Assembly: GCA_965112735.1 (NCBI GenBank)
Contig: OZ218958.1
Coordinates: forward strand, 2,976,001 to 3,040,000
Direction of reading: 5' to 3'
DNA: 64,000 nt
Source of the DNA: Phaeosaccion multiseriatum
Lineage: Eukaryota > Protista > Ochrophyta, other classes
Shown here piece by piece: positions 21,023 through 48,781 of the stretch. The position numbers were made by a program, and so were the translations under genes. Below the pieces are notes generated by a model that made no database searches, was not told the origin of the DNA, and saw only the letters and a program-made list of their open reading frames with translations. The first letter of the stretch is position 1, and each line of letters opens with the position of its first letter.

Positions 21023-22657
21023 ATGGAAGAAAGCCATGAAGAGACTGGTGGAGCGGGGGGAAATTTGCCAGAGCGCACCAGTCTCAGCAGCAGCGGGCCT
21101 GCGGCATTGAGGGTGGTTGCTGGCCGTGTTTCGAACAAGGCTCTGTGGGGCGTATGCAAGGAGGTCGACAAGTTAACCTCCCGCGCTTTGGTGATCAACG
21201 CCGACATGCCCCAAGCTGTCCAGTCGCGTGTGCTGAGTATGCTGAAGCAGCAGCAGCAGCGGGAGCGCGAGGAGTCTCAACGCCTTGCTGCGGCTTCCTC
21301 TCCTCGTCCCGCCTCCATGCAGGGAAGACATGCCGGGGAAGGGCTTCGAAGGTCAGGGAGGATTAGGGCGAGGCAGCCAGACCATGGTATGGCGGGCTCC
21401 TTTCGCGTCAAGGCGGTGCGCCTCGGCATCCAACGCCAAGACGCTGACGAGCTGACTCCTGCTGATACGGCTCTTGCTCTCAAAGTGTTGGCACTGCTGC
21501 CACTCTTGGTCAAGCGTGTGTGGTTTTCGGAGTTCTTCGATGCGTGCCGCGTTGCTGTACCGAGCGCCGTGGAGGAGGTGGAGTTTTCAAGCCTCTCAAG
21601 GTTCAACAGGCCAGTCGTTCTCCCCCCCTCGCTGAAGAAGGTCACTTTTGGAAATTATTTCGATCAAGCTGATTTGGTGTTACCAAGCTCTCTGGAGGAG
21701 CTGGAATTTGTATGGAACTCATTGTTCAACAGGCCAATCGTTCTTCCCCCCTCGCTGAAGAAGGTCATTTTTGGAGAAGACTTCGATCAGGCTGGTTTGG
21801 TGCTACCAAGGTCTCTGGAGGAGCTGGAGTTTGCATGGAACTCAAGGTTCAACAGGCCAATCGCTCTCCCTTCCTCCCTGAAGAAGGTCACTTTTGGAGA
21901 ACACTTCGATCAGGCTGATTTGGTGCTACCAAACTCTCTGGAGGTGCTGGAGTTTTCAGAGGAGTCATTGTTCGACAGGCCCATCGTTCTCCCTTCCTCG
22001 CTGAAGAAGGTCACTTTTGGAAGAGACTTCGATCAGGCTGATTTGGTGCTACCAAGCTCTCTGGAGGAGCTGGATTTTGTATGGAACTCATTGTTCAACA
22101 GGCCAATCGTTCTTCCCCCCTCGCTGAAGAAGGTCGCTTTTGGAGAACACTTCGATCATGCTGATTTGGTGCTACCAAGCTCTCTGGAGGTGCTGGAGTT
22201 TTCAGAGGAGTCATTGTTCGACAGGCCTATCGTTCTCCCTTCCTCGCTGAAGAAGGTCACTTTTGGAAGAGACTTCGATCAGGCTGATTTGGTGCTACCA
22301 AGCTCTCTGGAGGTGCTGGAGTTTTCATGGGACTCAAGCTTCAACAGGCCAATCGTTCTTCCCCCGTCGCTGAAGGAGGTCACTTTTGGAGGTGGATTTA
22401 ATCAGCATGTGGTCCTTCCCAATGGTGTGGAGGAGGTGGAAATGGGGCGTGACTTTAACCTCCCCCTGGACCTCCCTCCCTCTCTGCGGGCTCTTACACT
22501 GAGTCCTGTATACTCCTGCCCTCTTCCGAGCCTACCTGCTGGGCTGAAGAAGCTTACGGTGGGGGTGGGGTACCCGCTGCCTGCAGATCTACCCGAGGGG
22601 CTTGAGGTACACCAACATCGCTTTGAAGGATTAATCACTACTTTTCAAGCCTACTAG
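21023..22657 (+). CDS. FNIP-repeat protein copy 4, 544 aa
   Basis: Intact ORF with 7 units and internally duplicated cassettes. Confidence 0.9.
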   Translation: MEESHEETGGAGGNLPERTSLSSSGPAALRVVAGRVSNKALWGVCKEVDKLTSRALVINADMPQAVQSRVLSMLKQQQQREREESQRLAAASSPRPASMQGRHAGEGLRRSGRIRARQPDHGMAGSFRVKAVRLGIQRQDADELTPADTALALKVLALLPLLVKRVWFSEFFDACRVAVPSAVEEVEFSSLSRFNRPVVLPPSLKKVTFGNYFDQADLVLPSSLEELEFVWNSLFNRPIVLPPSLKKVIFGEDFDQAGLVLPRSLEELEFAWNSRFNRPIALPSSLKKVTFGEHFDQADLVLPNSLEVLEFSEESLFDRPIVLPSSLKKVTFGRDFDQADLVLPSSLEELDFVWNSLFNRPIVLPPSLKKVAFGEHFDHADLVLPSSLEVLEFSEESLFDRPIVLPSSLKKVTFGRDFDQADLVLPSSLEVLEFSWDSSFNRPIVLPPSLKEVTFGGGFNQHVVLPNGVEEVEMGRDFNLPLDLPPSLRALTLSPVYSCPLPSLPAGLKKLTVGVGYPLPADLPEGLEVHQHRFEGLITTFQAY

Positions 22658-23740
22658 AATGTCCCGTGCAGATTTCGACAGTGTAGCAACCGCATGGGTC
22701 CGCGGGAGCGGAGGCGAAAGTGAGCCCTGCCATCTTACCCCCCCCCCCCACCCCCTCCACTCCTCCCTTCGGCTGCGGTGCGAGAACCCAGTGCCTTCTT
22801 GGACTATCTCCCTCATCCACACTGCCTGCCTGCTCTCAGAGTGACTGCAGTCCCAAGCCTCGACTCGCCCACGCCAAGAGAGAGTCCACGAAGGCTGCCA
22901 CCGTCTGCCGCTGCCGCCACGTGAGGCGCGCCCTCTCTTCCTTGAGCACAAGGGCAATCTCCACGCTCGAAGCTTGACGCCGCTGCTATACCACCAACTG
23001 TCGCTGCTGGCGCCGGGGCTGACTGTGCTGGAGGCTGTTTGCCGCAGCGGTGCCCTCAGTGGCAGCAGACGGGGCGACGGAGAGGAGCGTCACCAGCAGC
23101 AGAATAGGGGCGGCGTCGTCCTCGTCTTGCTCGCCGTCCCCGTCCGGGCCTCCCTCAGCCTCGCCATTGCCCGCACCAGCATCAGGGCCACGCGCACCCG
23201 CACCATCGTCCCCTCCTCTCCAAGCCGCCACCGCCGCCGTTGTTGTACCACCAACTGCTAGTGGTGCTTGAGGCTGCCCAATGTACACACCTGCCACTGT
23301 GCCCTTTTCCCAAGCGGGATTGCACGTTGGTGATACAGCAAATGGTGCGAGCCCACCCTCGACGGTCAGCTCCTCCTCCTCTGACTCTTTGCTCTCTCAG
23401 AGGAGCCGCAGCAAACAGTGCTACGGGGCGCTCTCCCTCCAACACCTACACCCATCCACCGAGCCACATACACATGGACGGTGCGCGGCTCCAAAACATC
23501 GTGCGACCACACCCCAAACCGAAAGAGGACGAGACTGAGTCAAGCACGCCTCCCCCACCCCGCCGGGCAGCAGGAGTAGAAGCAGGAGCAGGATCAGGAT
23601 CAGGATCAGGATCGGGATCAGGATCAGGAGCAGGATCAGGAACCGGAGCAAGGCTCGCTCCGTCAGAGGCTCGCCTTGCATCTAGCGTCCAACGCTGGAA
23701 GCGGCACTGGCTGTAACTGTTTTGAAACTGTTCAAGTCCG

Positions 23741-24456
23741 TCACCAGGGGGGGCGAGTCATGGACATGGTGGCTTGTCCGGCGTCCACCGCTCCGACGGC
23801 GGCCTTCTTGAGACGCAACCCTCGCCCCACAAAGAGAGACCCGGCCACAGACAGGGTGGAGTCAGCCTGTGACATCACAGGTATTGCACACAAGAGTAAG
23901 TCAAGCGTAGAGCCGTAGAGTGTAGCATGATAGCGTTTAGGTTAGAGCCACACACACGTGCACACACACACACGCGCGCGCGCGCGCTCGCACATTGGTG
24001 TGGTACTCAGTCAGCCAGTCAGTTGGTCAAGTCAGTCAGTCAGTCAGTCAGTCAGTCAGTGGCTGAGTAATTCAGTTGGTGGCTGAGTCAGTCAGTCAGT
24101 CAGTCAGTCAGTCAGTCAGTCAGTCAGTCAGTGGCTGAGTAATTCAGTTGGTAGCTGAGTCAGTCAGTGCGTCACCAGACAGGGAGGTACACATTTGGAC
24201 CGGTAGATAGGCCAATGGAGGGAGAGAGAGGTGGGGGGGGGGGGGGTGGACTGGCAGGCACAGAACCACACAAGAGGATGTGTACTGTGGAGGCACTCAC
24301 ATAGGCCTGAGGTGTCCACTTGTTGGCCTTCGTAGCGCCACTGCTGGCAGGGTCGGTTGCTCCCTCTGCAAAGGGAGAACCGAGGGGCGTGAGGGGGGTG
24401 GGTGGGTGGGTGTACTTGTCACAAGCAGGTTCAGCTCGGTGGACTTGCACAGGGAA

Positions 24457-24495
<39 letters not shown>

Positions 24496-27400
24496 CAGAC
24501 AGAGAGAGAGAGAGAGGACCAGGCCGGGCCAGGCCAGGCCACCAGATCAAACGAGTGGGAAAGAGGAGTCCGTGAGCGTATTTGGCTTGGCCTCTTGGCC
24601 CTCCATGCTCTCCTCTCCTCTCCCTCGTGTTTGTTGTTCTACTCATCTCTCCTCGTGCTTGTTGCTGCTTACCTTGGGCAGCGTCCCCAGGGGGGAGGTT
24701 GGTCTTGTGCCAGAGGGTGGCGTCGTAGGGCATCTCTCCCCTGTTGCGGGGGGTGGGCGAGGGGTTGGGTGAGGTATGGCCAGGTGTGGAGCAACGACAG
24801 AAACCCAGCGCACACGCACACACGCACACACGCACACACGTACACACACAAGCAAGTAGGACCTTCCGTGAAACAAGTTGTGAAGTCCACACACTACAAC
24901 TTCCTCCACTCCCCCCCTCTCTCCCTTCGTCCCTCCCTCCCTCCCTCTCTGGCCCATGTCCCTCTCACTCACCCTCTTCCGCTGTTGATGAACTGCGTCA
25001 GAGGCGACGGCGGGCGATTGCCCCACTCCATCGTCGCGGAGAAAGTCTCTCCGAGCCCCACCGTCTCCGGAGAGTATCCGGTCTGTTGCAGCCTCCGCCT
25101 CAGGTCCTGACGCACCGGAGGGGAGAGCCGTATTCGGGGAGAGAGATAGGGAGTGGGCGAGGGGAGGGAGGGAGGGAGGGAGGGAGGAAGGGAGGGAGGG
25201 AGGAAGGGAGGGAGGGAGGAAGGGAGGGAGGGAGGAAGGGAGGGAGGGAGGAAGGGAGGGAGGGAGGAAGGGAGGGAGGGAGGGAGGGAGGGAGGGAGGG
25301 AGGGAGGGAGGGAAAATCTGTCCTTAGACCTCTGTGAGTGCGTGAGCGTCCTCCTTACGTAAGCATGCGTGTGTACCTGCATGCTTCCCGACGAGGAGGG
25401 GGTGCCCCGGGTGGTGACGAGCTTACCCCTGGCTGTCTGTGTGTGTGCGTGCGTGTGCTGCGTGTGCCCTCCACGCCGAGAGGCTGCATACACACAGAGC
25501 AGGGAAGGGTGGAGGGGGGCGTCAGGGCCACGCGCGCAAGCCCGTAGGCATTGGGTAAGCCGGCAGGCAAGAAGAGGGCACAATCTTACACCTTGATGCG
25601 CTGTAAGAACAGGAGTGTATACAGCATACACATGCTCTGATATGCTCTGCGGCTGAAAGTGAGGGCCCTCTCCCCCCCCTCCTATACACAGTCTGCCTGG
25701 ACAGTTTCAGTTTTCATTTCAGTTTCAGAGTCATATGCTTGGGTACAGTACTCACTTTGCCTGGAGGAGGCGGCGGTGTAGTCAGACTGCATCCGACGGA
25801 GCTCTCTGTGAAGTGCCATCTGTGTAACCGCCTCCTCCGCGATGGTGTCTGGGGAGGGGGAAGAGGGGGAGGAGGGAGGCAGAACCCAAACCAAGACAAA
25901 GCGCACACACACACACACACACATATATTCGAGGAGAGTTGGGGGCATAGAGGTGAGGTGTACGGGAATTAAGACTTTTAATGCTGACCAGTGGGCAACA
26001 ACAACGGCTACCCACCACCACCACCACCACCAACGCCACCATTGGTTGCCATCCCACCCCCTCTCTCACCGTCCTTGGCCACGACGTCTCTCTTGAGCTT
26101 GAGCACTCCCTCCTTGGTGAGGACCATCTCCTCGTGCTGCGCATCCATCTCCCCCCTGAGGGCCGCGTTCACCTTCTTCTGCGCCGTCAGCTCCACGTCC
26201 TTCAGCTGGGAGTGAATGAGTGAGTGAGTGCGTGTGTGGGTGCGCGGGTGGGGTGGATGGGTGTGTGCGTGGGTGCGTGGGTGGGTGGGTGGGTGGGTAG
26301 GTGGATGTGTTTCGAAAGGCGTATTTCCCCATTTGGTTGAGTTCATTGTGAGCGAAGGGGCATGACGAGAGGAAGGGGGGGAGGTGACAAGAGAGGATTG
26401 CCTGCCTTCGGTGGCATGACACATTTCTATGCGAGCATAGGTAAGCTTCCGTCACTACTCAAGTCAACCCGCGTTGAGATGGCGTGCATGGTATGTCTCC
26501 ATCCATGCCTCTGCTCCTGTGCTGACAGGGGTGGGTGAGGCCAAAAGGCACACGCAGTACTTCCCCTGAGCTTCGCCTCCATGTCCCGCACACGTGCCTC
26601 GGCCTCTAACCACTTGGTCTCTGCATCCTGCACAGTTTGATTCTAAAGGAAGGGATAAGAGAGGAGGAGTAGGAGGAGGAGGAGGAGGACGTGAGAAGAG
26701 CTCAATATGTTCGAGCAGAGGGAGGGAGCAAGCAGGACAGAGAGCGCAGCGCATTAAGTGTTCGAGTCGTTGGGGACACAAACAATGAGCGCATGTGCTC
26801 CATGAAACGCCTTGCAATACACCAAAGCGTGTCACCCCCGCTCGTCCCTTCCCCTCTCACACCCTCTCTTTCGGTCCTGTTCCTCTCTCACTCACTCACG
26901 CACTCAATCACTCACCGCCTCCCTCCTTCCCTCCTTCCCTCCCTCCCTCCTTCCCTCCCTCCCTCCGTCCGTCCCCTGTCCTGTCCTGCCACCTACCGCC
27001 TCCTTGCCCTGAAGCATGAGTTGGTCCGTCCGATGGAGGTCCTGCAGCCGCATGCTCCTCTCCTGCAGCCACCGCTCCACACTAAGCTTAGCCTTGCCTT
27101 CGAGCTTGGTGCGGTGCTCCAGCAGCCCCCCAAGGTCGTGCTTCAGCGTCGATATCTGTGAGGGCCGGGAGGTCCAGCGGAAGGGAAGGGGGGGGGGGGT
27201 GAATGAGGACAAGGGAGGCCTTACACAGCCAAGCTCCTATCGGCCATCTCTCTCGTAAGGGTTGACGACGGAGGATTCTTCGCACAGACAAACAGATCTG
27301 GAGGCATATGGGGGGCACACACAGAGAGACAGACAGACAGATAGAGAGGCACATGCGGAGACGGGCAGACAGACAGACAGACACAAAACAGATGGGATGG

Positions 27401-28522
27401 AAAATTGAAGGCATTGGCTAAGCACCCACCTCGTGCTCCATGAGGCGCATGCGCTTCTTCTGCCCCTCCCTGGCCACGTTCTCGATCTTCGCGGCCTTGT
27501 CGTAGCGAGCCACCTTGGCGAGGGCTTGCACATGCTGTGGGGAGAGGGGAGGGGGGGGGGGTTGAGGAGAGACAAGTTGAGGACGAGAAAAGATAAATAC
27601 GTGGTGCGGAGAGAAAGAGTGAGAGGGGAGGGAGGGAGTGAAAATGGGTGCGGGGAAAGAGAGGATGAGAAGAGAGAGAGGATATGGTGACCTGCAGAGA
27701 GAGAGTATGAGAGGGGAGTGCAAAGAAGAGTGAAAAGAAGAGTGTAGCACCCTTGTGCGCGAGCAATGGGATGCATGTACGCGTACCCACCTCAGATTTC
27801 AGTACCGATAGGCTCTCCTCGAGCGCGTCTGCCCTCCGAACACTTTGGCTCAGCTTCGCTCGCACGGCCTCCTGCACCGAGCGGGTTGAGAGATGGGTAG
27901 ACGCAGAAGCAAGCACAGAATGGATGGATGGTCGGATAACATCAGAGTGACTGGCTCCTAACCCAAAAGGATGATGAAGCTCGCCCGAAAGAGAGCGAGC
28001 GCCAGAGCGAGAGGAGCGCGAGGGGCCCCACTCCACCTTGGTGCTTTTCCGTACCGCTTCTTGATCGAGGTCAGCGCTCTTGTACACCTTGATGTCGCGC
28101 TCCTGAGCTTCGTAATCCTCCTAGAAAGAGGAGAGAATGGAGAGGGAAAGGCAAGAAAGGGTTGGGGAGGAGGAGGGAGGGGAGGAGAGGACAATACAAG
28201 GGGACCAGCCAAGAGAAGAGAGTAGACTGGATGATGAGGCAGGATGTATAGGGAAGGAGAAGGGGGGTAGTAGGAACCATCCTGATGTGTCTGCTTTGCC
28301 CGTGAACCAAGAAACAAAGCCCAGTCTCCCTGAGCTTCTCCTTCGGCCTTCGGTGCTCGAGCCATCGCCACTCGCGTCTATGCTATGTATATTGATATCG
28401 TATATTTCTCGCGCCCCTCTTTACTAATTACGACCCACCTGCAAGCGCTTGTACTTTGTCTCCACCTTCTCCAGCTCCTCCAGCCTCTTTCGGAGACGGC
28501 CCAGGTCCGCCTTGGTAGCCAT
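23741..28522 (-). CDS. Multi-exon coiled-coil protein, copy 2 (one donor site altered)
   Basis: Exons match copy 1. The donor after EAKLR reads GGAAGT instead of GTGAGG (~26560). Confidence 0.55.
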
Positions 28523-28730
28523 TCCTGCCGCCTGCCTATTGCAGCCCCATCACAGACGGGCTCAAGATCGGCTCAATCAAGAAGGGTCACAGTTTCAGGA
28601 TTCCCAACTGTGATTGGACAACCACACACTCACTCGATGCCAATGCGGGAGGTTTGATCGTCCGCCGCTGATTCCCTCCATCTCGCTCTCCGAGCACGAG
28701 AGGCCATACACATACACTGCTTCTGGCTCA

Positions 28731-30178
28731 TCAGTCCTCGCAGTCGCAGGGGTGCCCATTGGCATGCACCCACTGCTTGATCTCCTCAAAGACACTGCCC
28801 CTGACGTCCCACTGTCCACCTGCGTCCTCATCCTCTCTCCTGATGGCCTCTGGACAGACACTCTCGTCCCACGGACAGCCCACCTCTTCTGAGCGGAGCC
28901 ACTGCAGCATTTCCAGGCTCTTGCTGTATTTAACTGCATATCTGCAAGCGTCAGGGGTCCAATCACAAAGCTCACTCGCATTGGCATGCAGCCACCGCAG
29001 AGCGTCAAAACGGCCGAAAATGGCAGCAGTCAGAGCTCCCCTCCTCCACGAACTGCCCTCCTCCGCTCCCTCCAGCTCAGCCCTGACCTTGGGACTGTTC
29101 AGCAGCCATGCCAGCGCAGAGAGGTGCCCATTCTTAACAGCAGAGATCCAATTCCAGTGCTGAAAGGGCGCATTCACGTCATCCGACAGAAGCCACTCCA
29201 TCAGTTGCAAGTCCCCCCTCCGCGCAGCAGCATCGCAGACCCTCCAATCCCACGGGCATATCCCCTCCTTGCTGTCAGCCGAGTCCTCTGAGCGCAGCCA
29301 CTTGAGCACACGCAGGCTGTGCTGCTCGTTTCTCGATGCCGATTCGCACACCTCCTCATCCCAGGCACAGCCCATGTGATGGAGGGCCTTGCACATGCCC
29401 ACATCTCCATACTGAGCAGCAGCCCTGAACGTTTCGACTGTAAGCTCGTAGCCGTGCCTCCTGGCCCAGTGCACACGATCGATGGAGGCAACTACACTTG
29501 CTTGGCTCGTCGTGGCTGCGTACTCCACAATGTAGTACCCCCGCCACTCCTTGCACACCGTCGCCACGAAAGCGTACTCCCCCTTTCCCACGAGCTCCAT
29601 CACCTTTGCATACACTTCCTCCATACCAAAGGCGCTTGCACAGGCGCCCGAGCCAGGAAGGGGAAGTCGATGAGAGGTAGCACGTCCGCCATCTCCACTC
29701 TCTCCTCCGGAGGTCGAACGTCGCCGCTTGCTTCCCCCCCTCCTCTCTCTCCCTGCCTTTCCCTCCTCTACCTCAGCGTCCGGATTGTGGGGGCCGCGGC
29801 TTCTGGGCGCTGCTGAGGGTTGTACTTCGAGGCGGAGGAGGATCAGCTCCTTCTCTCTCTCTGTTGTTTCATCTCGCGTACCTTCCTTTTCTGAGACTTC
29901 TTCTTCACCTCGCGTACCCTCTCGTCCCTCTCGTGAGCCTTCTCTTTCGCCTTCTCGTCCCTCTCGTGAGCCTTCTCCTCTCTCAGCTGCTTCTTCTCCT
30001 CTCTCAAAGCTTGGAGGTGCATCAGCAGCTCCTTCCTCACCCCCTCCCTCTCACCATCCGCTGTTGACGTTGCTCCTCCCAAGCTCAGCCCCAGGTAGCT
30101 GCCCTGCGCGCTCAACGCCTGCTCCACTGCCTCCTCCTTCCTGCTCACTGCTGCGAGACTTGCATGTATGTCCTCCAT
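28731..30178 (-). pseudogene. Ankyrin-like repeat protein, subtype B2, frameshifted
   Basis: The frame from ATG 30178 stops at 29843 after a deletion near 29860. The rest (ORF 28731-29624) matches B1. Confidence 0.8.
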
Positions 30179-30277
30179 GTTGGAATCGTAAGAAAAAAGG
30201 CCGATTGTTGTTAATGGCCCTTGCTTCCAGCCCTCCTCGGAGCTGTGAGCCCTCAACGAATCTAGCACCAACACATC

Positions 30278-33200
30278 TGCAGGACGGCCTTGAAATGTGC
30301 TCCACACGGACACCAGACCGGGAGCGGCAGCAGCCCACAGCGAGACCCGCAAGGAGCGACACTACAGGGGCACCTACGACCGAGAGCGTGTTCGCCTCTC
30401 CACCTTCGCCATCGAGACCCACGGTCGACTCGGTGCACAGGCGCAATCGCTCCTACACGCACTCGCCGAGCACGTGGTCTCCCGCACGGGCCGCACTGGC
30501 TCCTCCACCACCAAGGGCCACGTCCTGACCAGACTTCGCCGTCTCATCAGCTACAGCCACCAGATGTGGCTCTCGGAGCGAGAGCGCGCCTTCCTGGGTC
30601 GGCTCAACCGCGGAGCCGGTCCTGCACACTCGCTCTTAGAGGGGGAGAACCGGCCCCTAAGATTCCCCCTAAGGCCTCAAAGCCAAATTTCAGTTTCTTA
30701 GGTGATTCCTATTAAGTCAACAAAGCCGCCGGGCCCTTGTATGTCAATTAACCCCGATAAATGTCAGTAGGACCGAAATTTTTTTGTTATTTTTTTGAAT
30801 CGGCTGGGGCACCTGAAGGAGGAGATGAATACTAGATATACGGACTATCCCAGACGAAGCGCTTGCGGAATCTTGAGGAAAACACAGTGAAATCGGGATT
30901 GGGCAGCTGAGAGCGTGCTCGCAGCAGCTTTGTGGCAAGAACTAGCGGGTGAGCGGCAAAGGTGCGTTTTTCTCCAACCTTGGTTTCGAGAGAGAGAGAG
31001 GACGGAGGGGGGTATACCCATAGAGATAAGCCGTGGGCAAGATAGGATCTCTTCTCCAGGAGTATGCGAAACTTTTCATATGCGTCGTATGCTCTTCCGC
31101 CTCCAGCTCGTCGGCACTTTTGCCCCTGAAGTTAGGGTACTCCACCCTCACAGTTGGATGTCTCTGAGACGTGGACGCTGCTCTATTCTACCGATTTTCA
31201 GGGCCCATCAGGGCGTCATCTCGTCCAAAGGACACGTCTGATGACCCCCGTACCGCCGCTGTCCATGGGCGGAGGGCAAGAGGTCTATCGCAGGTCGTCA
31301 CCCGAGGTGGCCGAAAAGGTGAGGGCGCACGAGAGGGGGAGAGGGCGTGAGATGGAAGGCTTCGCCTGGCAGTTACGAGCGGGGCAAGAGGGATCAACAT
31401 CACTCATATATAGCCTGGCTTGTGACCAAGTTTTAGCTTCAAAGGTCATAATCCCATGTGCACAATCGCATACGTGTACTCCCCTCTCTTTTGCCTTTGA
31501 AGGGCCCTTTTTGTGAGGTCATGAGCGGCCGATCCCACACCCCGTCAGAGCATCGTTCTTGCTTAAGGGGCGCTATACTAACTCCCCTGCCCCCTGTTAT
31601 TGCGGGACGTGGGTGGTGGGGCTATCGAGGGGACTTCGACATCTTCCCCCGATGTCACTGCATAGGTGGGGAAGTATGAGGCTGGAGAGGAAAGGGAATG
31701 GAACCTTCCCGGCGGAGTCAAGGGCGACACAAGGTGTGTTGTGGCATCTAGTGTGTGAGCTGTCAGATGTCGAACTTTCAGCTTCAGCGAGCTTAACAAG
31801 ACATGGGAAATCACCACTATGTTTACCTCCCTTATTTTGGCCCCTGTGGTTAGGTCATCACGAGGGGTATTACCGGGGCAGGAGAACGACTGCGGCAACC
31901 ATCTTGCCTCACTACAGGGAGCTAAAGGGGAAGGAGTAAGGATTTCACGAGCAGCAGTGGCAAGACGAGCGGGGGGATGAGAAACAGGCGTCCAGATAGG
32001 AGTCAAGCTTATCCGCCTCGTCGTCCACCCAGGAGACGCCGTTGCTGCAAGATCATCTGCAGCTCCTCTTGGCTACTGCGGATGAGCGTGCTCGTACTCT
32101 AGCCTCCCAGCCACGAGTGAGAGAAGCTCAATCAAGCGGCAGCTGGGTGCGCCATCGGCAGCCGAGGCGGCCGTGGGAGCTGAGCCGGAGAAGGGGGGGG
32201 AGGTAGCGTGCTGTTGCTGTGGGTGGTGGTGCTCGTCGTGGCACATGGTCGAGAAGCGATTGTGACTCAGGGGCGACAGGGCGATGAGCCGCAAGGCCAT
32301 ACTCAAGTCGCTGACCGCTCTGTATGCAGAGAAAGTGGGGTGGAGGCCGTGGCAGGGGGGTTAGGAGCTGCCAGAGGAGGGCTTGGCGGGCTACAGAGAC
32401 GGATTTCGCAGGTAAGACGGAGCCTCGTGCAGCATCTATAGTAGTAGTAGCCGTAGCAGCACCGATAAGGGGAGGAGGGGCAGTGTGTGTACAGTTGGAG
32501 CTGCCCATCCGTGAAATTGGGTTAAAATGACGAATATACACATAGATAGCGTTGTAAATCGCATCCTCGCCAAGGAGAGCATGTAAAGAGTACCAAATCG
32601 GCGCATGGTCATGAGGTATAGCCTCGCGTTGTATCTGGCCCATATCTATCGTCATACCCTCTCTTCCCCCTCGATCGAGGGTCAGGATGACGACGAAAAG
32701 GGGCCCTTCACACTTGTAAATTCTCTCCCTCACTCTGTAGCTCCTGAAAGGACACTTCGAGTTGCCCAGCACTCAGCAGACTATGTATCCCTCAAGTCTT
32801 CTCAAGGGTTTCATATATCGTGGTCTGCTGGTCGCACACGCTCCTCCCTCTCCTCACCATTTTTGAGGTGAAAACTGCTGCCATAAGTGTTTCCATCTCG
32901 CCTCACCCCTTCTGCTCCACAGCACCTGCAATCGCACTCTTAGCTGCTCAACGTCGACTTCCATATGTGGGTCGCAGTCTGCTCAAAGCTATTCCTCCCT
33001 CATGGGCTCTTGCTCGCACACGCTCTTCCCCCACTCCCCCCTTGTTTGAGGCCCAAATTCCCGCCAAAGCAACGGACATTTCAGCTCCACATGTTAGCCC
33101 ACTATCTCCTAAGACCGCGCTCCCAGCTTCACATCGGCTATTTGACTACATAATCCGTATTCAGCCCGAAGATTATCACCTCTTGTGTGAGCTACGCCTC

Positions 33201-35131: not shown

Positions 35132-36279
35132 TTTTATTTAAAAAAAAACAAAAACAATAATGAATAATTATCGTTCAAGCCCATAGAATGTCCCGTGCAG
35201 ATTTCGACAGTGTAGCAACCGCATGGGTCCGCGGGAGCGGAGGCGAAAGTGAGCCCTGCCATCTTACCCCCCCCCCCCCCCACCCCCTCCACTCCTCCCT
35301 TCGGCAGTGGTGCGACAACCCAGTGCCTTCTTGGACTCTCTTCGTCATCCTCACTGCCTGCCTGCTCTCAGTGTGTCTGCAGGCCCAAGCCTCGACTCGC
35401 CCACGCCAAGAGAGAGTCCACGAAGGCTGCCACCGTCTGCCGCTGCCGCCACGTGAGGCGCGCCCTCTCTTCCTTGAGCACAAGGGCAATCTCCACGCTC
35501 GAAGCTTGACGCCGCTGCTGTACCACCAACTGTCGCTGCTGGCGCCGGGGCTGACTGTGCTGGAGGCTGTTTGCCGCAGCGGTGCCCTCAGTGGCAGCAG
35601 ACGGGGCGACGGAGAGGAGCGTCACCAGCAGCAGAATAGGGGCGGCATCGTCCTCGTCTTGCTCGCCGGCCCCGTCCGGGCCTCCCTCAGCCTCGCCATT
35701 GCCCGCACCAGCATCAGGGCCACACGCACCGGCACCATCGGCCCGTCCCGAAGCTGCAGGACCCTCCTCTCTAAGCCGCCACCGCCGCCGTTGTTGTACC
35801 ACCAACTGCTAGTGGTGCTTGAGGCTGCCCAATGTACACACCTGCCACTGTGCCCTTTTCCCAAGCGGGATTGCACGTTGGTGATACAGCAAATGGTGCG
35901 AGCCCACCCTCGACGGTCAGCTCCTCCTCCTCTGACTCTTTGCTCTCTCAGAGGAGCCGCAGCAAACAGTCCTACGGGGCGCTCTCCCTCCAACACCTAC
36001 ACCCATCCACCGAGCCACATACACATGGACGGTGCGCGGCTCCAAAACATCGTGCGACCACACCCCAAACCGAAAGAGGACGAGACTGAGTCAAGTACGC
36101 CTCCCCCACCCCGCCGGGCAGCAGGAGCAGAAGCAGAAGCAGGATCAGGATCAGGATCAGGATCAGGAGCAGGATCAGGAACGGGAGCAAGGCTCGCTCC
36201 GTCAGAGGCTCGCCTTGCATCTAGCGTCCAACGCTGGAAGCGGCACTGGCTGTAACTGTTTTGAAACTGTTCAAGTCCG

Positions 36280-39200
36280 TCACCAGGGGGTGCGAGTCAT
36301 GGACATGGTGGCTTGTCCGGCGTCCACCGCTCCGACGGCGGCCTTCTTGAGACGCAACCCTCGCCCCACAAAGAGAGACCCGGCCACAGACAGGGTGGAG
36401 TCAGCCTGTGACATCACAGGTATTGCACACAAGAGTAAGTCAAGCGTAGAGCCGTAGAGTGTAGCATGATAGCGTTTAGGTTAGAGCCACACACACGTGC
36501 ACACACACACGCGCGCGCGCGCGCGCGCTCGCACATTGGTGTGGTACTCAGTCAGCCAGTCAGTTGGTCAAGTCAGTCAGTCAGTCAGTCAGTCAGTCAG
36601 TGGCTTCAATGGCTGAGTAATTCAGTTGGTGGCTGAGTCAGTCAGTCAGTCAGTCAGTCAGTCAGTCAGTGGCTGAGTAATTCAGTTGGTAGCTGAGTCA
36701 GTCAGTGCGTCATCAGACAGGGAGGTACACATTTGGACCGGTAGATAGGCCAATGGAGGGAGAGAGAGGTGGGGGGGGGGGGGGTGGACTGGCAGGCACA
36801 GAACCACACAAGAGGATGTGTACTGGGGAGGCACTCACATAGGCCTGAGGTGTCCACTTGTTAGCCTTCGTAGCACCACTGCTGGCAGGGTCGATTGCTC
36901 CCTCTGCAAATGGAGAACCGACAGGGGGTGAGGGGGGTGAGGGGGGTGGGTGGGTGTACTTGTCACAAGCAGGTTCAGCTCGGTGCACTTGCACAGAGAA
37001 TGTGAGAGAGAGAGATATAGACAGAAAGACAGACAGAGAGAGAGAGGGAGGGAGAGAGAGAGAGAGGACCAGGCCGGGCCAGGCCAGGCCACCAGATCAA
37101 ACGAGTGGAAAAGAGGAGTCCGTGAGCCTATTTGGCTTGGCCTCTTGGCCCTCCATGCTCTCCTCTCCTCTCCCTCGTGTTTGTTGCTGCTTACCTTGGG
37201 CAGCGTCCCCAGGGGGGAGGTTGGTCTTGTGCCAGAGGGTGGCGTCGTAGGGCATCTCTCCCCTGTTGCGGGGGGTGGGCGAGGGGTTGGGTGAGGTATG
37301 GCCAGGTGTGGAGCAACGACAGAAACCCAGCGCACACGCACACACGCACACACGCACACACGTACACACACAAGCAAGTAGGACCTTCCGTGAAACAAGT
37401 TGTGAAGTCCACACACTACAACCTTCCTCCACTCCCCCCCTCTCTCCCTTCGTCCCTCCCTCCCTCCCTCTCTGGCCCATGTCCCTCTCACTCACCCTCT
37501 TCCGCTGTTGATGAACTGCGTGAGAGGCGACGGCGGGCGATTGCCCCACTCCATCGTCGCGGAGAAAGTCTCTCCAAGCCCCACCGTCTCCGGAGAGTAT
37601 CCGGTCTGTTGCAGCCTCCGCCTCAGGTCCTGACGCACCGGAGGGGAGAGCCGTATTCAGGGAGAGAGAGAGGGAGTGGGCGAGGGGAGGGAGGGAGGGG
37701 GGGAGGGAGGGAGGAAGTGAGGGAGGGAGGGAGAGTGGAACGGAGAGATACAGGGAGGGAGGGAGGGAGGGAGGGAACATCTGTCCTTAGATCTCTGTGA
37801 GAGCGTGAGCGTCCTCCTTACGTTAGCATGCGTGTGTACCTGCATGCTGCCCGACGAGGAGGGGGTGCCCCGGGTGGTGACGAGCTTACCCCTGGCCGTC
37901 TGTGTGTGTGCGTGCGTGTGCTTCGTGTGCCCTCCACGCCGAGAGGCTGCATACACACAGAGCAGGGAAGGGTGGAGGGGGGCGTCAGCGCCACGCGCGC
38001 AAGCCCGTAGGCATTGGGTAAGCCGGCAGGCAAGAAGAGGGCACAATCTTACACCTTGATGTGCTGTAAGAACAGGAGTGTACAGAGCATACACATGCTC
38101 TGATATGCTCTGCGGCTGAAAGTGAGGGCCCTCCCCCCCCTCCTCTAATACACAAGTCTGCCTGGGCAGTATCAGTTTTCATTTCAGTTTCAGAGTCACA
38201 TGATTGGGTACAGTACTCACTTTGCCTGGAGGAGGCGGCGGTGTAGTCAGACTGCATCCGACGGAGCTCTCTGTGAAGTGCCATCTGTGTAACCGCCTCC
38301 TCCGCGATGGTGTCTGGGGAGGGGGAAGAGGGGGAGGAGGGAGGCAGAACCCAAACCGAGACAAAGCGCACACACACACACACATACATATATTCGAGGA
38401 GAGTTGGGGGCAGAAAGGTGAGGTGTAGGGGAATAAAAGGCTTTTAATGCTGACCAGTGGGCAACAACAACGGCTACCCACCACCACCACCACCGCCACC
38501 ACCATTGGTTGCCATCCCACCCCCTCTCTCACCGTCCTTGGCCACGACGTCTCTCTTGAGCTTGAGCACTCCCTCCTTGGTGAGGACCATCTCCTCGTGC
38601 TGCGCATCCATCTCCCCCCTGAGGGCCGCGTTCACCTTCTTCTGCGCCGTCAGCTCCACGTCCTTCAGCTGGGAGTGAATGAGTGAGTGAGTGCGTGTGT
38701 GGGTGCGCGGGTGGGGTGGATGGGTGTGTGCGTGGGTGCGTGCGTGGGTGGGTGGGTGGGTAGGTGGATGTGTTTCGAAAGGCGTATTTCCCCATTTGGT
38801 TGAGTTCATTGTGAGCGAAGGGGCATGACGAGAGGAAGGGGGGGAGGTGACAAGAGAGGATTGCCTGCCTTCGGTGGCATGACACATTTCTATGCGAGCA
38901 TAGGTAAGCTTCCGTCACTACTCAAGTCAACCCGCGTTGAGATGGCGTGCATGGTATGTCTCCATCCATGCCTCTGCTCCTGTGCTGACAGGGGTGGGTG
39001 AGGCCAAAAGGTACACGCAGTCCTCACCCTGAGCTTCGCCTCCATGTCCCGCACACGTGCCTCAGCCTCTAACCACTTGGTCTCTGCAACCTGCACAGTT
39101 TGATTCTAAAGGAAGGGATAAGAGAGGAGGAGTAGGAGGAAGAGGAGAAAGAGGAGGAGGAGGAGGACGTGAAAAGAGCTCAATATGTTCGAGCAGAGGG

Positions 39201-39797
39201 AGGGAGCCAGCAGGACAGAGAGCGCAGCGCATAAGTGTTCGAGTCGTTGGGGACACAAACAATGAGCACATGTGCTCCATGAAACGCCTTGCAATACACC
39301 AAAGCGTGTCATCCCCGCTCGTCCCTTCCCCTCTCACGCCCTCTCTTTCGGTCCTGTTTCTCTCTCACTCACTCACTCACTCACTCAATCACTCTCCGCC
39401 TCCCTCCTTCCCTCCCTCCTTCCCTCCTTCCTTCCCTCCCTCCCTCCCTCCCTCCGTCCGTCCCCTGTCCTGTCCTGCCACCTACCGCCTCCTTGCCCTG
39501 AAGCATGAGTTTGTCCGTCCGATGGAGATCCTGCAGCCGCATGCTCCTCTCCTGCAGCCACCGCTCCTCACTAAGCTTGGCCTTGCCTTCGAGCTTGGTA
39601 CGGTGCTCCAGCAGCCCCCCAAGGTCGTGCTTCAGAGTCGATATCTGTGAGGGCCGGGAGGTCCAGCGGAAGGGAAGGGGGGGGGGGTGAATGAGGGCAA
39701 GGGAGGCCTTACACAGCCAAGCTCCTATCGGCCATCTCTCTCGTAAGGGTTGACGACGGAGGATTCTTCGCACAGACTAACAGATCCAGAGGCATAT

Positions 39798-39835
<38 letters not shown>

Positions 39836-41062
39836 GACAGACAGACAGACAGATAGAGAGGCACATGCGGAGACGGGCAGACAGACAGACAGACACAAAA
39901 CAGATGGGATGGAAAATTGAAGGCATTGGCTAAGCACCCACCTCGTGCTCCATGAGGCGCATGCGCTTCTTCTGCCCCTCCCTGGCCACGTTCTCGATCT
40001 TCGCGGCCTTGTCGTAGCGAGCCACCTTGGCGAGGGCTTGCACATGCTGTGGAGAGAGAGGAGGGGGGGGGGTTGAGGAGAGACAAGTTGAGGACGAGAA
40101 AAGATAAATACGTGGTGCGGAGAGAAAGAGTGAGAGGGGAGGGAGGGAGTGAAAATGGGCGCGGAGAACAAGAGGATGAGAAGTGAGAGAGAGTGTCATG
40201 GTGACCTGCAGAGAGAGTATGAGAGGGGAGTGCAAAGAAGAGTGAAAAGAAGAGTGTAGCACCCTTGTGCGCGAGCAATGGGATGGATGTACGCGTACCC
40301 ACCTCAGATTTCAGTACCGATAGGCTCTCCTCGAGCGCGTCTGCCCTCCGAACACTTTGGCTCAGCTTCGCTCGCACGGCCTCCTGCACCGAGCGGGTTG
40401 AGAGACGGGGAGACGCAGAAGCAAGCACAGAATGGATGGATGGATGGTCGGATAACATCAGAGTGACTGGCCCCTTTCCCATATGGATGATGAAGCTCGT
40501 CCGAATCAGAGTCTGAGGGAGAAAGAGAAAGCGCGCCAGAGCGAGAGGAGCGCGAGGGCCCCCACTCCACCTTGGTGCTTTTCCGTACCGCTTCTTGATC
40601 GAGGTCAGCGTGCCCGCTCTTGTGCACCTTGATGTCGCGCTCCTGAGCTTCGTAATCCTCCTAGAACGAGGAGAGAATGGAGAGGGAAAGACAAGAGAGG
40701 GTTGGGGAGGAGGAGGGAGGGGAGGAGAGGACAATACAAGGTGACCAGCCAAGAGAAGAGAGTAGACTGGATGATGAGGCAGGATGTATAGGGAAGGAGA
40801 AGGGGGGTAGTAGGAACCATCCTGATGTGTCTGCTTTGCCCGTGAACCAAGAAACAAAGCCCAGTCTCCCTGAGCTTCTCCTCCGGCCTTCGGTGCTCGA
40901 GCCATCGCCACTCGCGTCTATGCTATGTATATTGATATCGTATATTTCTCGCGCCCCTCTTTACTAATTACGACCCACCTGCAAGCGCTTGTACTTTGTC
41001 TCCACCTTCTCCAGCTCCTCCAGCCTCTTTCGGAGACGGCCCAGGTCCGCCTTGGTAGCCAT
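36280..41062 (-). CDS. Multi-exon coiled-coil protein, copy 3
   Basis: Exon set matches copy 1. Confidence 0.55.
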
Positions 41063-41270
41063 TCCTGCCGCCTGCCTATTGCAGCCCCATCACAGACGGG
41101 CTCAAGATCGGCTCAATCAAGAAGGGTCACAGTTTCAGGATTCCCAACTGTGATTGGACAACCACACACTCACTCGATGCCAATGCGGGAGGTTTGATCG
41201 TCCGCCGCTGATTCCCTCCATCTCGCTCTCCGAGCACGAGAGGCCATACACATACACTGCTTCTGGCTCA

Positions 41271-42250
41271 TCAGTCCTCGCAGTCGCAGGGGTGCCCATT
41301 GGCATGCACCCACTGCTTGATCTCCTCAAAGACACTGCCCCTGACGTCCCACTGTCCACCTGCGTCCTCATCCTCTCTCCTGATGGCCTCTGGACAGACA
41401 CTCTCGTCCCACGGACAGCCCATCTCTTCAGAGCGGAGCCACTGCAGCATTGCTAGGCTCTTGCCGTATTTAACTGCATACTGGCATACGTCAGGGGTCC
41501 AATCACAAAGCTCACTCGCATTGGCATGCAGCCACCGCAGAGCGTCAAAACGGCCGAAAATGGCAGCCTTCCAAGCTCCTGCCCTCCACCCACTCCCCTC
41601 CTCCGCTCCGTCCAGCTTAGCCCTGACCTTGGGACTGTTCAGCAGCCATGCCAGCACAGAGAGGTGCCCATAATGAATAGCAGAGATCTAATTCCAGTGC
41701 TGAAAGGGCGCATTCACGTCATCCGACAGAAGCCACTCCAGCAGTTGCAAGTCCCCCCTCCGCGCAGCAGCATCGCAGACCCTCCAATCCCACGGGCATT
41801 TCCCCTCCTTAGCGTCAGCCGAGTCCTCTGAGCGCAGCCACTTGAGCACACGCAGGCTGTGCCGCTCGTTTCTCGATGCCGATTCGCACACCTCCTCATC
41901 CCAGGCACAGCCCATGTGATGGAGTGCCTTGCACATGCTCACATCTCCATACTGAGCAGCGGCCCTGAACGTTTCGACTGTAAGCTCGTAGCCGTGCCTC
42001 CTGGCCCAGTACACACGATCGATGGAGGCAACTACACTTGCTTGGCTCGTCGTGGCTGCGTACTCCACCATGTAGTACCCCTCCACTCCTTGCACACCGT
42101 CGCCACGAAAGCGTACTCCCCCTTTCCCACGAGCTCCATCACCTTTGCATACACTTCCTCCATACCAAAGGCGCTTGCACAGGCGCCCGAGCCAGGAAGG
42201 GGAAGTCGATGAGAGGCAGCACGTCCGCCATCTCCACTCTCTCCTCCGAA
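41271..42250 (-). pseudogene. Ankyrin-like repeat protein, subtype B3, truncated
   Basis: TGG>TAG stop at 41688, 1-nt frameshift near 42080, and 5' end removed at a deletion junction near 42255. Confidence 0.85.
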
Positions 42251-42869: not shown

Positions 42870-42906
<37 letters not shown>

Positions 42907-43590: not shown

Positions 43591-45045
43591 TCAGTTCTCG
43601 CAGTCGCAGGGGTGCCCATTGGCATGCACCCACTGCTTGATCTCCTCAAGGACACTGCCCCTGACGTCCCACTGTTCACCAGCTTCCTCCTCCTCTCTCC
43701 TGATGACCTCTGGACAGACACTCCCATCCCACGGACAGCCCACCTCTTCTGAGCGGAGCCACAACAGCATTTCCAGGCTCTTGCCTCCTTCAAGTGCCGC
43801 TCTGCATACGTCAGGGGTCCAATCACAGAACTCACGCGCGTTGGCATGCAGCCACCGCAGAGCGTCGAAATGGCCGAGAAGGGCAGCAGTCCGAGCTCCC
43901 CTCCTCCAATGGCCGAAAAGGGCAGCCTTCCGAGCTCCCTTCCTCCACCAACTGCCCTCCTCCGCTCCCTCCAGCTCAGCTCTGACTTTGGGATTGTTCA
44001 GCAGCCATGCCAGCGCAGAGATGTGCCCATAATAAATAGCACAGAGCCACACATACTCATCAAAGGGGGCGTTCACGTCATCCGACAGAAGCCACTCCAG
44101 CAGTTGCAAGTCCCCCCTCCCCGCAGCAACATTGCAGACCTCCACATTCCACGGGCATTTCCCCTCCTTGGTGTCAGCCGAGTCCTCTGAGCGCAGCCAC
44201 TTGAGCACATGCAGGCTGTGCCGCTCGTTTCTCGATGCCCCTTCGCACACCTCCTCATCCCAGGGACAGCCCATGTGATGAAGGGCCTTGCACATGCTCA
44301 CATCTCCATACTGAGCAGCGGCCCTGAACGTTTCGACTGTAAGCTCGTAGCCGTGCCTCCTAGCCCAGTACACACGATCGATGGAGGCAACTACACTCTT
44401 TTGGCTTGTCTTGGCTGCGTGTTCCAGGATGTAGTACCCTCTCCACTCCTTGCACACCGTCGCCACGAAAGCGTACTCCCCCTTTCCCACGAGCTCCATC
44501 ACCTTTGCATACACTTCCTCCATACCAAAGGCGCTCGCACAGGCGGCCGAGCCAGGAAGGGGAAGTCGATGAGATGTAGCACGTCCAATGGTTCCACTCT
44601 CTCCGCCGGAGGTCGAACGTCGCCGCTTGCTTCCCCCCCTCCTCTCTCTCCCTGCCTTCCCGTCCTCTACCTCAGCGTCCGGATTGTGGGGGCCGCGGCT
44701 TCTGGGCGCTGCTGAGGGTTGTACTTCAAGGCGGAGGAGGATCAGTTCCTTCTCTCTCTCCAGCGCCCTCTCTTTTCTCTTCTCGTCTAATAACTTTGCC
44801 TCCTTCTCCATCTCGCGTAACTTCTCGTCCCTCTCGTGAACCTCCATTCTCATTTGCTTCTTCTCCTCTCTCAAAGCTTGGAGGTGCATCAACAGCTCCT
44901 TCCTCACCCCCTCCCTCTCACCATCCGCTGTTGACGTTGCTCCTCCCAAGCTCAGCCCCAGGTAGCTGCCCTGCGCGCTCAACGCCTGCTCCACTGCCTC
45001 CTCCTTCCTGCTCACTGCTGCGATACTCGCACGTATGTCCTCCAT
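43591..45045 (-). CDS. Ankyrin-like repeat protein, subtype A3, 484 aa
   Basis: Intact ORF. Its N-terminal GLSLGGATSTA is shared with B2. Confidence 0.85.
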   Translation of the reverse strand: MEDIRASIAAVSRKEEAVEQALSAQGSYLGLSLGGATSTADGEREGVRKELLMHLQALREEKKQMRMEVHERDEKLREMEKEAKLLDEKRKERALEREKELILLRLEVQPSAAPRSRGPHNPDAEVEDGKAGRERRGGSKRRRSTSGGESGTIGRATSHRLPLPGSAACASAFGMEEVYAKVMELVGKGEYAFVATVCKEWRGYYILEHAAKTSQKSVVASIDRVYWARRHGYELTVETFRAAAQYGDVSMCKALHHMGCPWDEEVCEGASRNERHSLHVLKWLRSEDSADTKEGKCPWNVEVCNVAAGRGDLQLLEWLLSDDVNAPFDEYVWLCAIYYGHISALAWLLNNPKVRAELEGAEEGSWWRKGARKAALFGHWRRGARTAALLGHFDALRWLHANAREFCDWTPDVCRAALEGGKSLEMLLWLRSEEVGCPWDGSVCPEVIRREEEEAGEQWDVRGSVLEEIKQWVHANGHPCDCEN

Positions 45046-45293
45046 GATGGAATCGTAAGACAAAAAGGCCGATTGTTTGGTTGCCCCCCCCTCTTGCTTC
45101 CAGCCCTCGGAGCTGTGAGCCCTCTACGAACCTAGCACCAACACGTCAAGTCAAATCAGAAATTTCGAAATTTCCCGATTCCCGATCAGTCGGTCTACAC
45201 AGTGAAGTATCGCAGAGACGCTGGAAAGGGGGAAGGAGAGAGAGAGTACATTGAAGGGCCGAAGGAAGGGAAGAAGGGGGGGGGGGGAATGTG

Positions 45294-46865
45294 ATGGAAG
45301 AAAGCCATGAAGAGACTGGTGGAGCGGGGGGAAATTTGCCAGAGCGCACCAGTCTCAGCAGCAGCGGGCCGGCGGCATTGAAGGTGGTTGCTGGTCGTGA
45401 TGGTGTTTCAAACAAGGCTCTGTGGGGCGTATGCAAGGTGGTCGACAAGGAAACCTCACGCGCTTTGGTGATCAACGCCGACATGCCCCAAGCTATCCAG
45501 TCGCGTGTGCTGAGTACGCTGAAGCAGCAGCAGCGGGAGCGCGAGAAGTCTCAACACTCCCAGGAAGGGCTTCGAAGGTCGGGAAGGATAAGGGCGAGGC
45601 AGCTGGACCATGGTATGGCGGGCTCCTTTCGCGTCAAGGCGGTGCGCCTCGGCATCCAACGCCAAGACGCTGACGAGCTGACTCCTGCTGATGGGGCTCT
45701 TGCTGTCAAAGTGTTGGCACTGCTGCCACTCTTGGTCAAGCGTGTGGGGTTTTCGGAGTTCTTCGATGCGTGCCGCGTTGTTGTACCGAGCGGCGTGGAG
45801 GAGGTGGAGTTTGCACGGAACTCAAGGTTCAACAGGCCAATCGTTCTCCCTTCCTCACTGAAGAAGGTCACTTTTGGAAAATGGTTCAATCAGGCTGATT
45901 TGGTGCTACCAAGCTCTCTGAAGGTGCTGGACTTTTCAATACTCTCAGATTTCAACAGGCCAGTCGTTCTCCCCCCCTCGCTGAAGAAGGTCACTTTTGG
46001 AAATTACTTCGATCAAGCTGATTTGGTGTTACCAAGCTCTCTGGAGGAGCTGGAATTTGTATGGAACTCAATGTTCAACAGGCCAATCGTTCTTCCCCCC
46101 TCGCTGAAGAAGGTCACTTTTGGAGAAGACTTCGATCAGGCTGGTTTGGTGCTACCAAGCTCTCTGGAGGAGCTAAAGTTTGCATGGAACTCAAACTTCA
46201 ACAGGCCAATCGCTCTCCCTTCCTCGCTGAAGAAGGTCACTTTTGGAGAACACTTCGATCAGGCTGATTTGGTGCTACCAAGCTCTCTGGAGGAGCTGGA
46301 TTTATGGGACTCAAGGTTCAACAGGCCAATCGCTCTCCCGTCCTCGCTGAAGAAGGTCGCTTTTGGAGATTGCTTCGATCATGCTGATTTGGTGCTACCA
46401 AGCTCTCTGGAGGTGCTGGAGTTTTCAGAGCACTCAGAGTTCGACAGTCCAATCGTTCTCCCTTCCTCGCTGAAGAAGGTCACTTTTGGAATAGCCTTCG
46501 ATCAGGCTGATTTGGTGCTACCAAGCTTTCTGGAGGAGCTGCAGTTTTCATGGGACTCAAGCTTCAACAGGCCAATCGTTCTTCCCCCGTCGCTGAAGGA
46601 GGTCACTTTTGGAGGTGGATTTAATCAGCATGTGGTCCTTCCCAATGGTGTGGAGGAGGTGGAAATGGGGCGTGACTTTAACCTCCCCCTGGACCTCCCT
46701 CCCTCTCTGCGGGCTCTTACACTGAGTCCTGTATACTCCTGCCCTCTTCCGAGCCTACCTGCTGGGCTGAAGAAGCTTACGGTGGGGGTGGGGTACCCGC
46801 TGCCTGCAGATCTACCCGAGGGGCTTCAGGTACACCAACATCGCTTTGAAGGATTAATCGATTAA
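45294..46865 (+). CDS. FNIP-repeat protein copy 6, 523 aa
   Basis: Intact ORF with 7 units; a mosaic of copies 2, 4 and 5. Confidence 0.9.
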   Translation: MEESHEETGGAGGNLPERTSLSSSGPAALKVVAGRDGVSNKALWGVCKVVDKETSRALVINADMPQAIQSRVLSTLKQQQREREKSQHSQEGLRRSGRIRARQLDHGMAGSFRVKAVRLGIQRQDADELTPADGALAVKVLALLPLLVKRVGFSEFFDACRVVVPSGVEEVEFARNSRFNRPIVLPSSLKKVTFGKWFNQADLVLPSSLKVLDFSILSDFNRPVVLPPSLKKVTFGNYFDQADLVLPSSLEELEFVWNSMFNRPIVLPPSLKKVTFGEDFDQAGLVLPSSLEELKFAWNSNFNRPIALPSSLKKVTFGEHFDQADLVLPSSLEELDLWDSRFNRPIALPSSLKKVAFGDCFDHADLVLPSSLEVLEFSEHSEFDSPIVLPSSLKKVTFGIAFDQADLVLPSFLEELQFSWDSSFNRPIVLPPSLKEVTFGGGFNQHVVLPNGVEEVEMGRDFNLPLDLPPSLRALTLSPVYSCPLPSLPAGLKKLTVGVGYPLPADLPEGLQVHQHRFEGLID

Positions 46866-48779: not shown

Positions 48780-48781
48780 GA

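Follow-up and report, generated by a model that had tools for sequence, protein, structure and literature searches.

Mosaic FNIP-repeat genes and sequence exchange between tandem paralogues in the alga Phaeosaccion multiseriatum

Six FNIP-repeat genes in duplicated blocks

We analysed a 64,000-nt stretch of the genome of the stramenopile alga Phaeosaccion multiseriatum (positions 2,976,001-3,040,000 of contig 9, OZ218958.1, in a 67 Mb genome of 22 contigs), hereafter called the window and numbered from its first letter, which contains six paralogous genes (copies 1 to 6) encoding leucine-rich repeat (LRR) proteins of the FNIP family. Self-comparison of the window revealed that a ~16-kb segment (426-16440) is tandemly repeated at 93-96% identity and is followed by a third, rearranged copy; in a self-BLAST, 426-10625 matched 16440-26689 at 95.0% and 10630-13977 matched 26661-29977 at 96.2%. 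Each segment carries two head-to-head gene pairs, composed of an ankyrin-repeat gene on the reverse strand and an FNIP-repeat gene on the forward strand, and the first full ~16-kb block (426-16440) reads ankyrin A, FNIP copy 2, a 6-kb spacer, ankyrin B and FNIP copy 3. The FNIP genes, all on the forward strand, are copy 1 (3' end at 1-400, the remainder of this 9-unit gene, locus L010, lying upstream of the window), copy 2 (4991-6622, 7 units at 5525-6379), copy 3 (14540-16149, 7 units at 15073-15930, broken), copy 4 (21023-22657, 7 units at 21557-22414), copy 5 (33653-35131, 6 units at 34193-34924) and copy 6 (45294-46865, 7 units at 45783-46637). Their flanks place copies 2, 4, and 6 in positional type A and copies 1 and 3 in positional type B; copy 5 is a hybrid by this measure, as it starts like type B but is followed by a spacer of type A.

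The FNIP proteins of the window match Pfam PF05725 at 181-202 bits (cut-off 21; E 1e-54 to 1e-60) over 8-11 stretches each, and they are homologous to the solved FGxxFN LRR structures Crov588 (6nyr, E 8.9e-69) and Crov539 (7zal, E 3.8e-25). Their repeat unit has a period of 123 nt and encodes 41 aa, equivalent to two LRRs. The first half (a-half, 21 residues, L-E-x-L-x-F / xxxSx / FNRP) is a lengthened variant of FGxxFN, and the second (b-half, 20 residues) reads L-K-K-V-T-FG / xx / F[DN]Q. Both half-units align with the 22-aa repeat of the Crov structures and both loops, which are the most variable positions of the unit, fall at the ‘xx’ of FGxxFN; in the FGxxFN LRR structures the ‘xx’ residues are the most variable positions and lie on the edge of the concave face (PMC9525666). 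The rest of the unit forms a scaffold that is ~90% identical whichever register is compared. These genes resemble those for the FNIP proteins of Cafeteria roenbergensis virus, Dictyostelium and giant viruses in homology, in their Pfam FNIP assignment and in the variable gap between FG and FN, but differ from the Crov proteins in the alternation of F-xxxSx-FN (21 aa) with FG-xx-F[DN] (20 aa) and in an additional N-terminal domain of ~190 aa. No Pfam family matched this domain at E up to 10; an F-box was considered there and not adopted on that ground. Pfam also recognised no domain other than LRR in the FNIP proteins. The best relative found by a word-based protein search of public protein sets was 40% identical, and a look-up for an exact protein record of copy 6 found none. 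Six-frame matches to the family number 309 in the 67 Mb, the strongest mostly on this contig, and open frames are kept in nearly all members.

Written as pairs of a-loop and b-loop, the units of copy 2 read ARDSR-EH, SSLSR-EH, VWNSL-KD, AWNSN-EH, LWDSR-DC, SEESL-EF and PWISE-GG; those of copy 4 read SSLSR-NY, VWNSL-ED, AWNSR-EH, SEESL-RD, VWNSL-EH, SEESL-RD and SWDSS-GG; and those of copy 6 read ARNSR-KW, SILSD-NY, VWNSM-ED, AWNSN-EH, LWDSR-DC, SEHSE-IA and SWDSS-GG. An earlier note, made by reading the letters of this stretch, had listed these strings and proposed that cassettes are shuffled among the paralogues by recombination or gene conversion through an invariant scaffold. All three strings are correct in the translations. 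The same holds for two further details of that reading, namely an N-terminal string of copy 6 that matches copy 5 and not copies 2, 3, or 4, and the occurrence in copy 5, at a different position, of the one-codon-short LWDSR loop, which there forms the a-half of the last (6th) unit. The cassette observation is therefore confirmed and, as detailed below, so is exchange of DNA among the genes.

Exchange tracts and loop reassortment inside the arrays

With a DNA profile, 196 complete units were located on this contig, distributed over 25 genes that form the nearest part of the family of 309 genome-wide matches, and all were set on a common 41-codon frame. In this set, a-halves of different genes differ on average at 12 of 63 nt, and only 0.35% of 18,200 pairs differ at 2 nt or fewer. 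Several tracts stand out from this background. The last unit of copy 5 (34808-34924, forward strand) is a chimera. Its a-half (34808-34867) corresponds to the LWDSR half of copy 6 unit 5, with 2 of 60 nt different and an identical 3-nt deletion, and its b-half is that of the terminal unit of copy 1 (1 of 60 nt from copy 1 unit 9, as opposed to 17 of 60 from copy 6 unit 5). Units 3b-5 of copy 1 (L010:1480-1785, beyond the window) and units 2b-4 of copy 6 differ at 8 of 306 nt, six of which are in a single loop, and the units flanking this tract differ at 14-26 of 123 nt. Units 4-5 of copy 3 differ at 0 and 2 of 123 nt, respectively, from units 11-12 of L013, a 13-unit gene located 107 kb away. 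By contrast, copies 1 and 3 have N-terminal domains that are 97.5% identical, yet their closest inter-copy pair of units differs at 7 or more of 123 nt.

Copy 4 records rearrangements within a single array. Its first unit (21557-21679, forward strand) fuses a first-unit head to an SSLSR unit: the first ~13 nt are those of copy 2 unit 1 and the rest is that of copy 2 unit 2, with the junction inside a stretch common to both, such that copy 4 is exactly one 123-nt unit shorter here than copies 2 and 6. The internal duplication that the earlier note had seen in copy 4 is evident at the nucleotide level, where unit 4 (SEESL-RD, 21926-22048, forward strand) is a duplicate of unit 6 (22172-22294) with 2 of 123 nt different; the two are sisters in a tree of units (Shimodaira-Hasegawa-like approximate likelihood-ratio test, SH-aLRT, 89-90), and Tandem Repeats Finder reports a 369-nt period there. 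Between them, unit 5 contains a patch of intragenic conversion (22076-22120, forward strand) in which the VWNSL loop of unit 2 has been written over an LWDSR position. Its a-half is 1 of 63 nt from copy 2 unit 3 and 2 of 63 nt from copy 4 unit 2 (tree support 92), while the unit still begins with ELD and ends in the KKVA...FDHA b-half, as an LWDSR-DC unit does.

A position-by-position three-way comparison of copies 2, 4, and 6 found private clustered patches in each, and copy 6 also carries a private 48-nt deletion. The shortest of the tracts described here measures about 45 nt and the longest several hundred nt. The tracts differ by 0-3% whereas their flanks differ by 4-7%, which indicates that the tracts are younger than the block duplications. 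The same three-way comparison did not bear out the idea that copy 6 is a mosaic of copies 4 and 2. It has the seven-unit order of copy 2, and its units are homologous, position for position, to those of copies 2 and 4, so that a strict chimera was discarded in favour of mostly shared descent; the sharing of states with copy 4 in some places and copy 2 in others is not diagnostic, because plain divergence of three sequences predicts it.

Do such cases reflect a general behaviour of the family? Among the 196 units, identical five-residue a-loops occur in 138 unit pairs against 13 expected, a tenfold excess (maximum of 33 in 500 column shuffles). When first units are excluded, 49 of the 70 inter-gene pairs with identical a-loops do not occupy the same position, regardless of whether the count starts at the N- or at the C-terminus. 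Inter-gene pairs that share an a-loop also share the b-loop 62 nt downstream in only 14% of cases and the neighbouring a-loops in 3-4%. Silent differences in the scaffold, counted at codons that specify the same residue, amount to 0.059 next to shared loops and 0.110 otherwise (nominal P 4.5e-7), and those of the b-half to 7.9% with shared loops and 11.2% otherwise. The shared loops are thus most likely inherited and not convergent, because linked silent variants of the scaffold accompany them. These numbers refine the notion of a cassette as a movable piece: loops do move, but what moves is smaller than the 41-aa cassette pair, namely a half-unit loop that measures at most about 60 nt.

A maximum-likelihood tree built from the 43 units of copies 1-6 shows no grouping of units by gene of origin (31 changes of gene label, as compared with 28 after shuffling). 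First units and last units do group by position, as do the units of the A-type trio, the exceptions being the tracts listed above (SH-aLRT 87-92). Silent divergence of the scaffold is 0.095 within genes and 0.104 between genes, and that of the single-copy N-terminal domain among paralogues is 0.079. The first two values are nearly equal and close to the third, which is expected if continuing exchange keeps scaffolds similar. Concerted evolution within genes was discarded, since units are not clustered by gene and silent divergence is nearly the same within and between them.

These results bear directly on the possibility that there is no exchange at all, similar loops having arisen repeatedly by selected point mutation and shifts in position coming only from the gain or loss of whole units. 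Loop residues are indeed biased, with W at position 2, D or N at position 3 and a fixed S at position 4, and most units of the three A-type copies follow position. However, the LWDSR loops have a rare 3-nt deletion in common, shared loops travel with the linked silent variants just described, and neighbouring loops are not conserved, contrary to what is expected when whole units alone are gained and lost. Incompatible site patterns are, moreover, also found in single-copy N-terminal and non-coding sequence (see below). We consider it very unlikely that mutation and whole-unit changes suffice.

Mosaicism in single-copy and non-coding sequence

The N-terminal domain of copy 6 contains a ~210-nt tract (45395-45604, forward strand) in which 15 discriminating sites in a row, a 6-nt insertion among them, pair copy 6 with copy 5, whereas the discriminating sites on either side place it with copies 2 and 4. 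Several of the tract states are found in copies 5 and 6 alone among 20 genes. As to direction, the two copies deviate from the family consensus at 10 and 11 sites, 6 of them common, and because both deviate about equally neither can be called donor or acceptor; a third gene is a possible donor. The two-codon insertion itself (6 nt, at about 33756 and 45397) is present in 5 of 20 members (copies 5 and 6, L007, L011, and L017), and these carriers are not otherwise mutual closest relatives, another sign of reticulate history.

Statistical tests, run in purpose-written implementations and not in standard packages, detected the same pattern over the duplicated segment. The pairwise homoplasy index (PHI) was significant for the N-terminal domain in 20 genes (P < 0.0005) and in the six genes of the window (P = 0.0005), as well as for the 6-kb non-coding spacer that follows copies 2, 4, 5, and 6 (P < 0.0005). 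In this spacer (46866-52950 on the 3' side of copy 6, itself mosaic, with paralogues at 6623-12600, 22658-28600 and 35132-41150), 53 two-against-two sites lie in blocks whose grouping alternates. In a three-way alignment covering 10 kb of the A-type blocks, the site patterns that single out one copy fall into 158 runs where 281 are expected (z -12.5; z -11.0 after dropping sites near gaps and z -3.9 after collapsing neighbouring sites), with 124 runs against 216 expected outside the arrays and 34 against 57 inside. Clustering outside the arrays as well implies that exchange affects the whole duplicated segment and not the repeat arrays alone. As much mosaicism as in the repeat arrays is seen in the ankyrin partner and the intergenic region, and likewise in the N-terminal domain and the 6-kb spacer. 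The proposal of recombination or gene conversion through the scaffold therefore stands in one respect, as sequence is exchanged between and within paralogues, breakpoints fall in near-identical scaffold and loops are reassorted; it fails in another, since exchange is not tied to the scaffold.

Such mosaics might in principle be artefacts of assembly or polishing, produced by correction of reads across paralogues or by mis-joined repeats. The copies are similar (93-98%) and in tandem, so that polishing there can mix variants of paralogues, and a search for independent sequence of these genes found none. Copy 3, the only broken FNIP copy of the window, has lost one G from a run of four (about 15037) and is otherwise intact; either it became a pseudogene very recently or the base was miscalled, and the position of this frameshift in a G-run is compatible with an artefact. 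On the other hand, the 16-kb blocks are 4-7% diverged throughout and the longest exact stretches that they have in common measure 341-539 nt, a length easily resolved by long reads. Tract edges are sharp and involve private indels, among them the 6-nt insertion and the 48-nt deletion of copy 6, and the pattern recurs between loci 107 kb apart and over 25 genes, in a family in which nearly all members have open frames. An artefactual origin of the mosaics is accordingly quite unlikely. A false duplication in the assembly was likewise judged unlikely, exact shared stretches never exceeding 539 nt.

The ankyrin genes that face the A-type copies head-to-head are located, all on the reverse strand, at 3274-4746 (copy 2), 19325-20881 (copy 4) and 43591-45063 (copy 6). 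Of the three B-type ankyrin partners, two are broken. Ankyrin B2 (28731-30360, reverse strand) has a 4-nt deletion and, compared with ankyrin B1, an in-frame deletion of 99 nt equivalent to three 33-nt repeats, and ankyrin B3 (41271-42248, reverse strand) is a remnant that lacks the first ~450 nt, has further deletions and ends at the rearrangement junction 42248/42261. The 33-nt tandem repeat is present in 4.8 copies at 13917-14076 in ankyrin B1, where it encodes a lysine- and glutamate-rich, coiled-coil-like stretch, and its copy number varies among the ankyrin paralogues (forms of 490, 518, and 522 aa). For the N-terminus of the ankyrin partner, Pfam at E up to 10 returned only weak matches of coiled-coil type.

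Between the broken ankyrin B2 and FNIP copy 5 lies a 2.7-kb dispersed element (30734-33455) bounded by ~33-nt terminal inverted repeats (about 30738-30770 and 33423-33455, reverse matches of each other). At least 20 near-full-length copies exist on other contigs, at 91-99% identity and two of them at 99%, which gives it the appearance of a recently active DNA transposon, probably a non-autonomous one. Just upstream is a separate dispersed repeat of ~390 nt (30273-30658) with at least 7 copies at 92-93% identity, these too on other contigs. The internal units 2-5 of copy 5 (34316-34807) stand apart from the rest of the 196 units, differing from all of them at 13 or more of 123 nt, and contain unusual scaffold substitutions; together with the upstream transposon and the broken partner, these odd units may reflect relaxed constraint on copy 5. 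Past the duplicated region, 56283-62800 contains unique long open reading frames with abundant poly-glutamine and simple repeats and no convincing Pfam domain, and microsatellites such as (TG)n, (GGAGA)n, (GGGA)n and (CTGA)n are common all over the window.

Mode of exchange and comparison with known systems

Taken together, the tracts, the loop statistics and the mosaic single-copy sequence are probably explained, and we hold this with good confidence, by ectopic gene conversion and unequal crossing-over in a tandem family of FNIP/FGxxFN LRR genes. After their duplication, the tandem ~16-kb copies would have kept exchanging sequence by non-allelic homologous recombination, presumably in the germline and over evolutionary time. 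Outside the arrays this would leave ordinary conversion tracts. Inside them, the near-identical 123-nt scaffold present in all genes would permit pairing in any register, and out-of-register pairing could yield deletions and duplications of whole units, short patches copied from unit to unit within one gene, and half-units moved between genes to new positions. In the long term, the a- and b-loops of each unit would reassort almost independently. As the loops align to the ‘xx’ of FGxxFN on the concave edge, new combinations of a probable binding surface would arise in this way.

Some observations weigh against this explanation. The junctions and the timing of events were read from a single assembly, and there is no independent copy of the mosaics, since the closest public homologue is only 40% identical. 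The P-values of the unit-pair comparisons are nominal and indicative only, as pairs are not independent of one another. Finally, no donor was identified for some multi-nucleotide loop differences that come with zero scaffold change, for example those between copies 2 and 4 in units 6 and 7; these could be selected point changes.

A more radical possibility is programmed diversification, in which cassettes from silent or broken copies would be passed to expressed genes, either somatically or as a clone grows, along the lines of models for lamprey variable lymphocyte receptors (VLR), trypanosome variant surface glycoproteins (VSG) and the conversion of chicken immunoglobulin genes by pseudogenes. 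Reassortment of loops at the sub-unit level through a fixed scaffold, the broken state of one FNIP copy and two ankyrin partners, and the large size of the family speak in its favour. Nevertheless, all 37 unit matches found by nhmmer in the 64-kb window lie inside six full-length genes, with no orphan cassettes, and each of the six has an N-terminal domain, a C-terminal cap and an upstream region of its own. Exchange is as evident in the non-coding spacer and the ankyrin genes and is not confined to the variable gene. The sole broken FNIP copy is off by one homopolymer base, and the donor of the tract shared by copies 5 and 6 cannot be called. The suggestion that disrupted copies act as donors hence found no support, given that only copy 3 is broken, by 1 nt, and that the window is devoid of promoterless cassette fragments, and we regard a programmed system as most improbable. 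Equally remote is a short-patch, high-rate templated repair that would operate in vegetative growth and rewrite FNIP loops from paralogous templates. It is conceivable because adjacent loops 60 nt apart are co-inherited in only ~14% of cases and because multi-nucleotide loop replacements leave at least 100 flanking bases intact; if true, it would represent a diversity generator at the level of cell lineages in an alga and not slow germline evolution.

A comparison with the lamprey VLR system shows both similarities and differences. There, too, LRR cassettes are joined via short scaffold homology and generate combinatorial binding surfaces, but they are assembled somatically from one incomplete germline gene and hundreds of partial silent cassettes, whereas here all copies are complete genes, orphan cassettes are absent from the window and the mosaics are presumably in the germline. 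The paper on the FGxxFN structures contrasts that family with somatic VLR, and exchange between paralogues is not its subject (PMC9525666). No paper that connects FNIP repeats to gene conversion came up in a full-text search of the literature.

Ectopic gene conversion and unequal crossing-over have closer parallels in plant clusters of LRR resistance genes, such as the nucleotide-binding-site LRR genes of the coffee SH3 locus, which likewise consist of tandem paralogues subject to both processes (PMC3113787). The plant clusters also resemble the FNIP genes in that unit numbers change, genes are mosaic and a conserved scaffold displays variable residues exposed to solvent. Tomato Cf-4/9 and lettuce RGC2 are further tandem LRR clusters with sequence exchange. 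Unlike in plants, the repeat is here a 41-aa FNIP/FGxxFN double unit with neither an NB-ARC nor a receptor-kinase domain, the host is a stramenopile alga, and each gene stands head-to-head with an ankyrin gene. The FNIP family thus evolves as classical recognition-gene clusters do and does not represent a new mechanism of diversity. For annotators, this means that trees of FNIP paralogues will be reticulate. For the biology of the alga, it supports the FNIP genes as a candidate fast-evolving binding repertoire, possibly directed against viruses or other partners.

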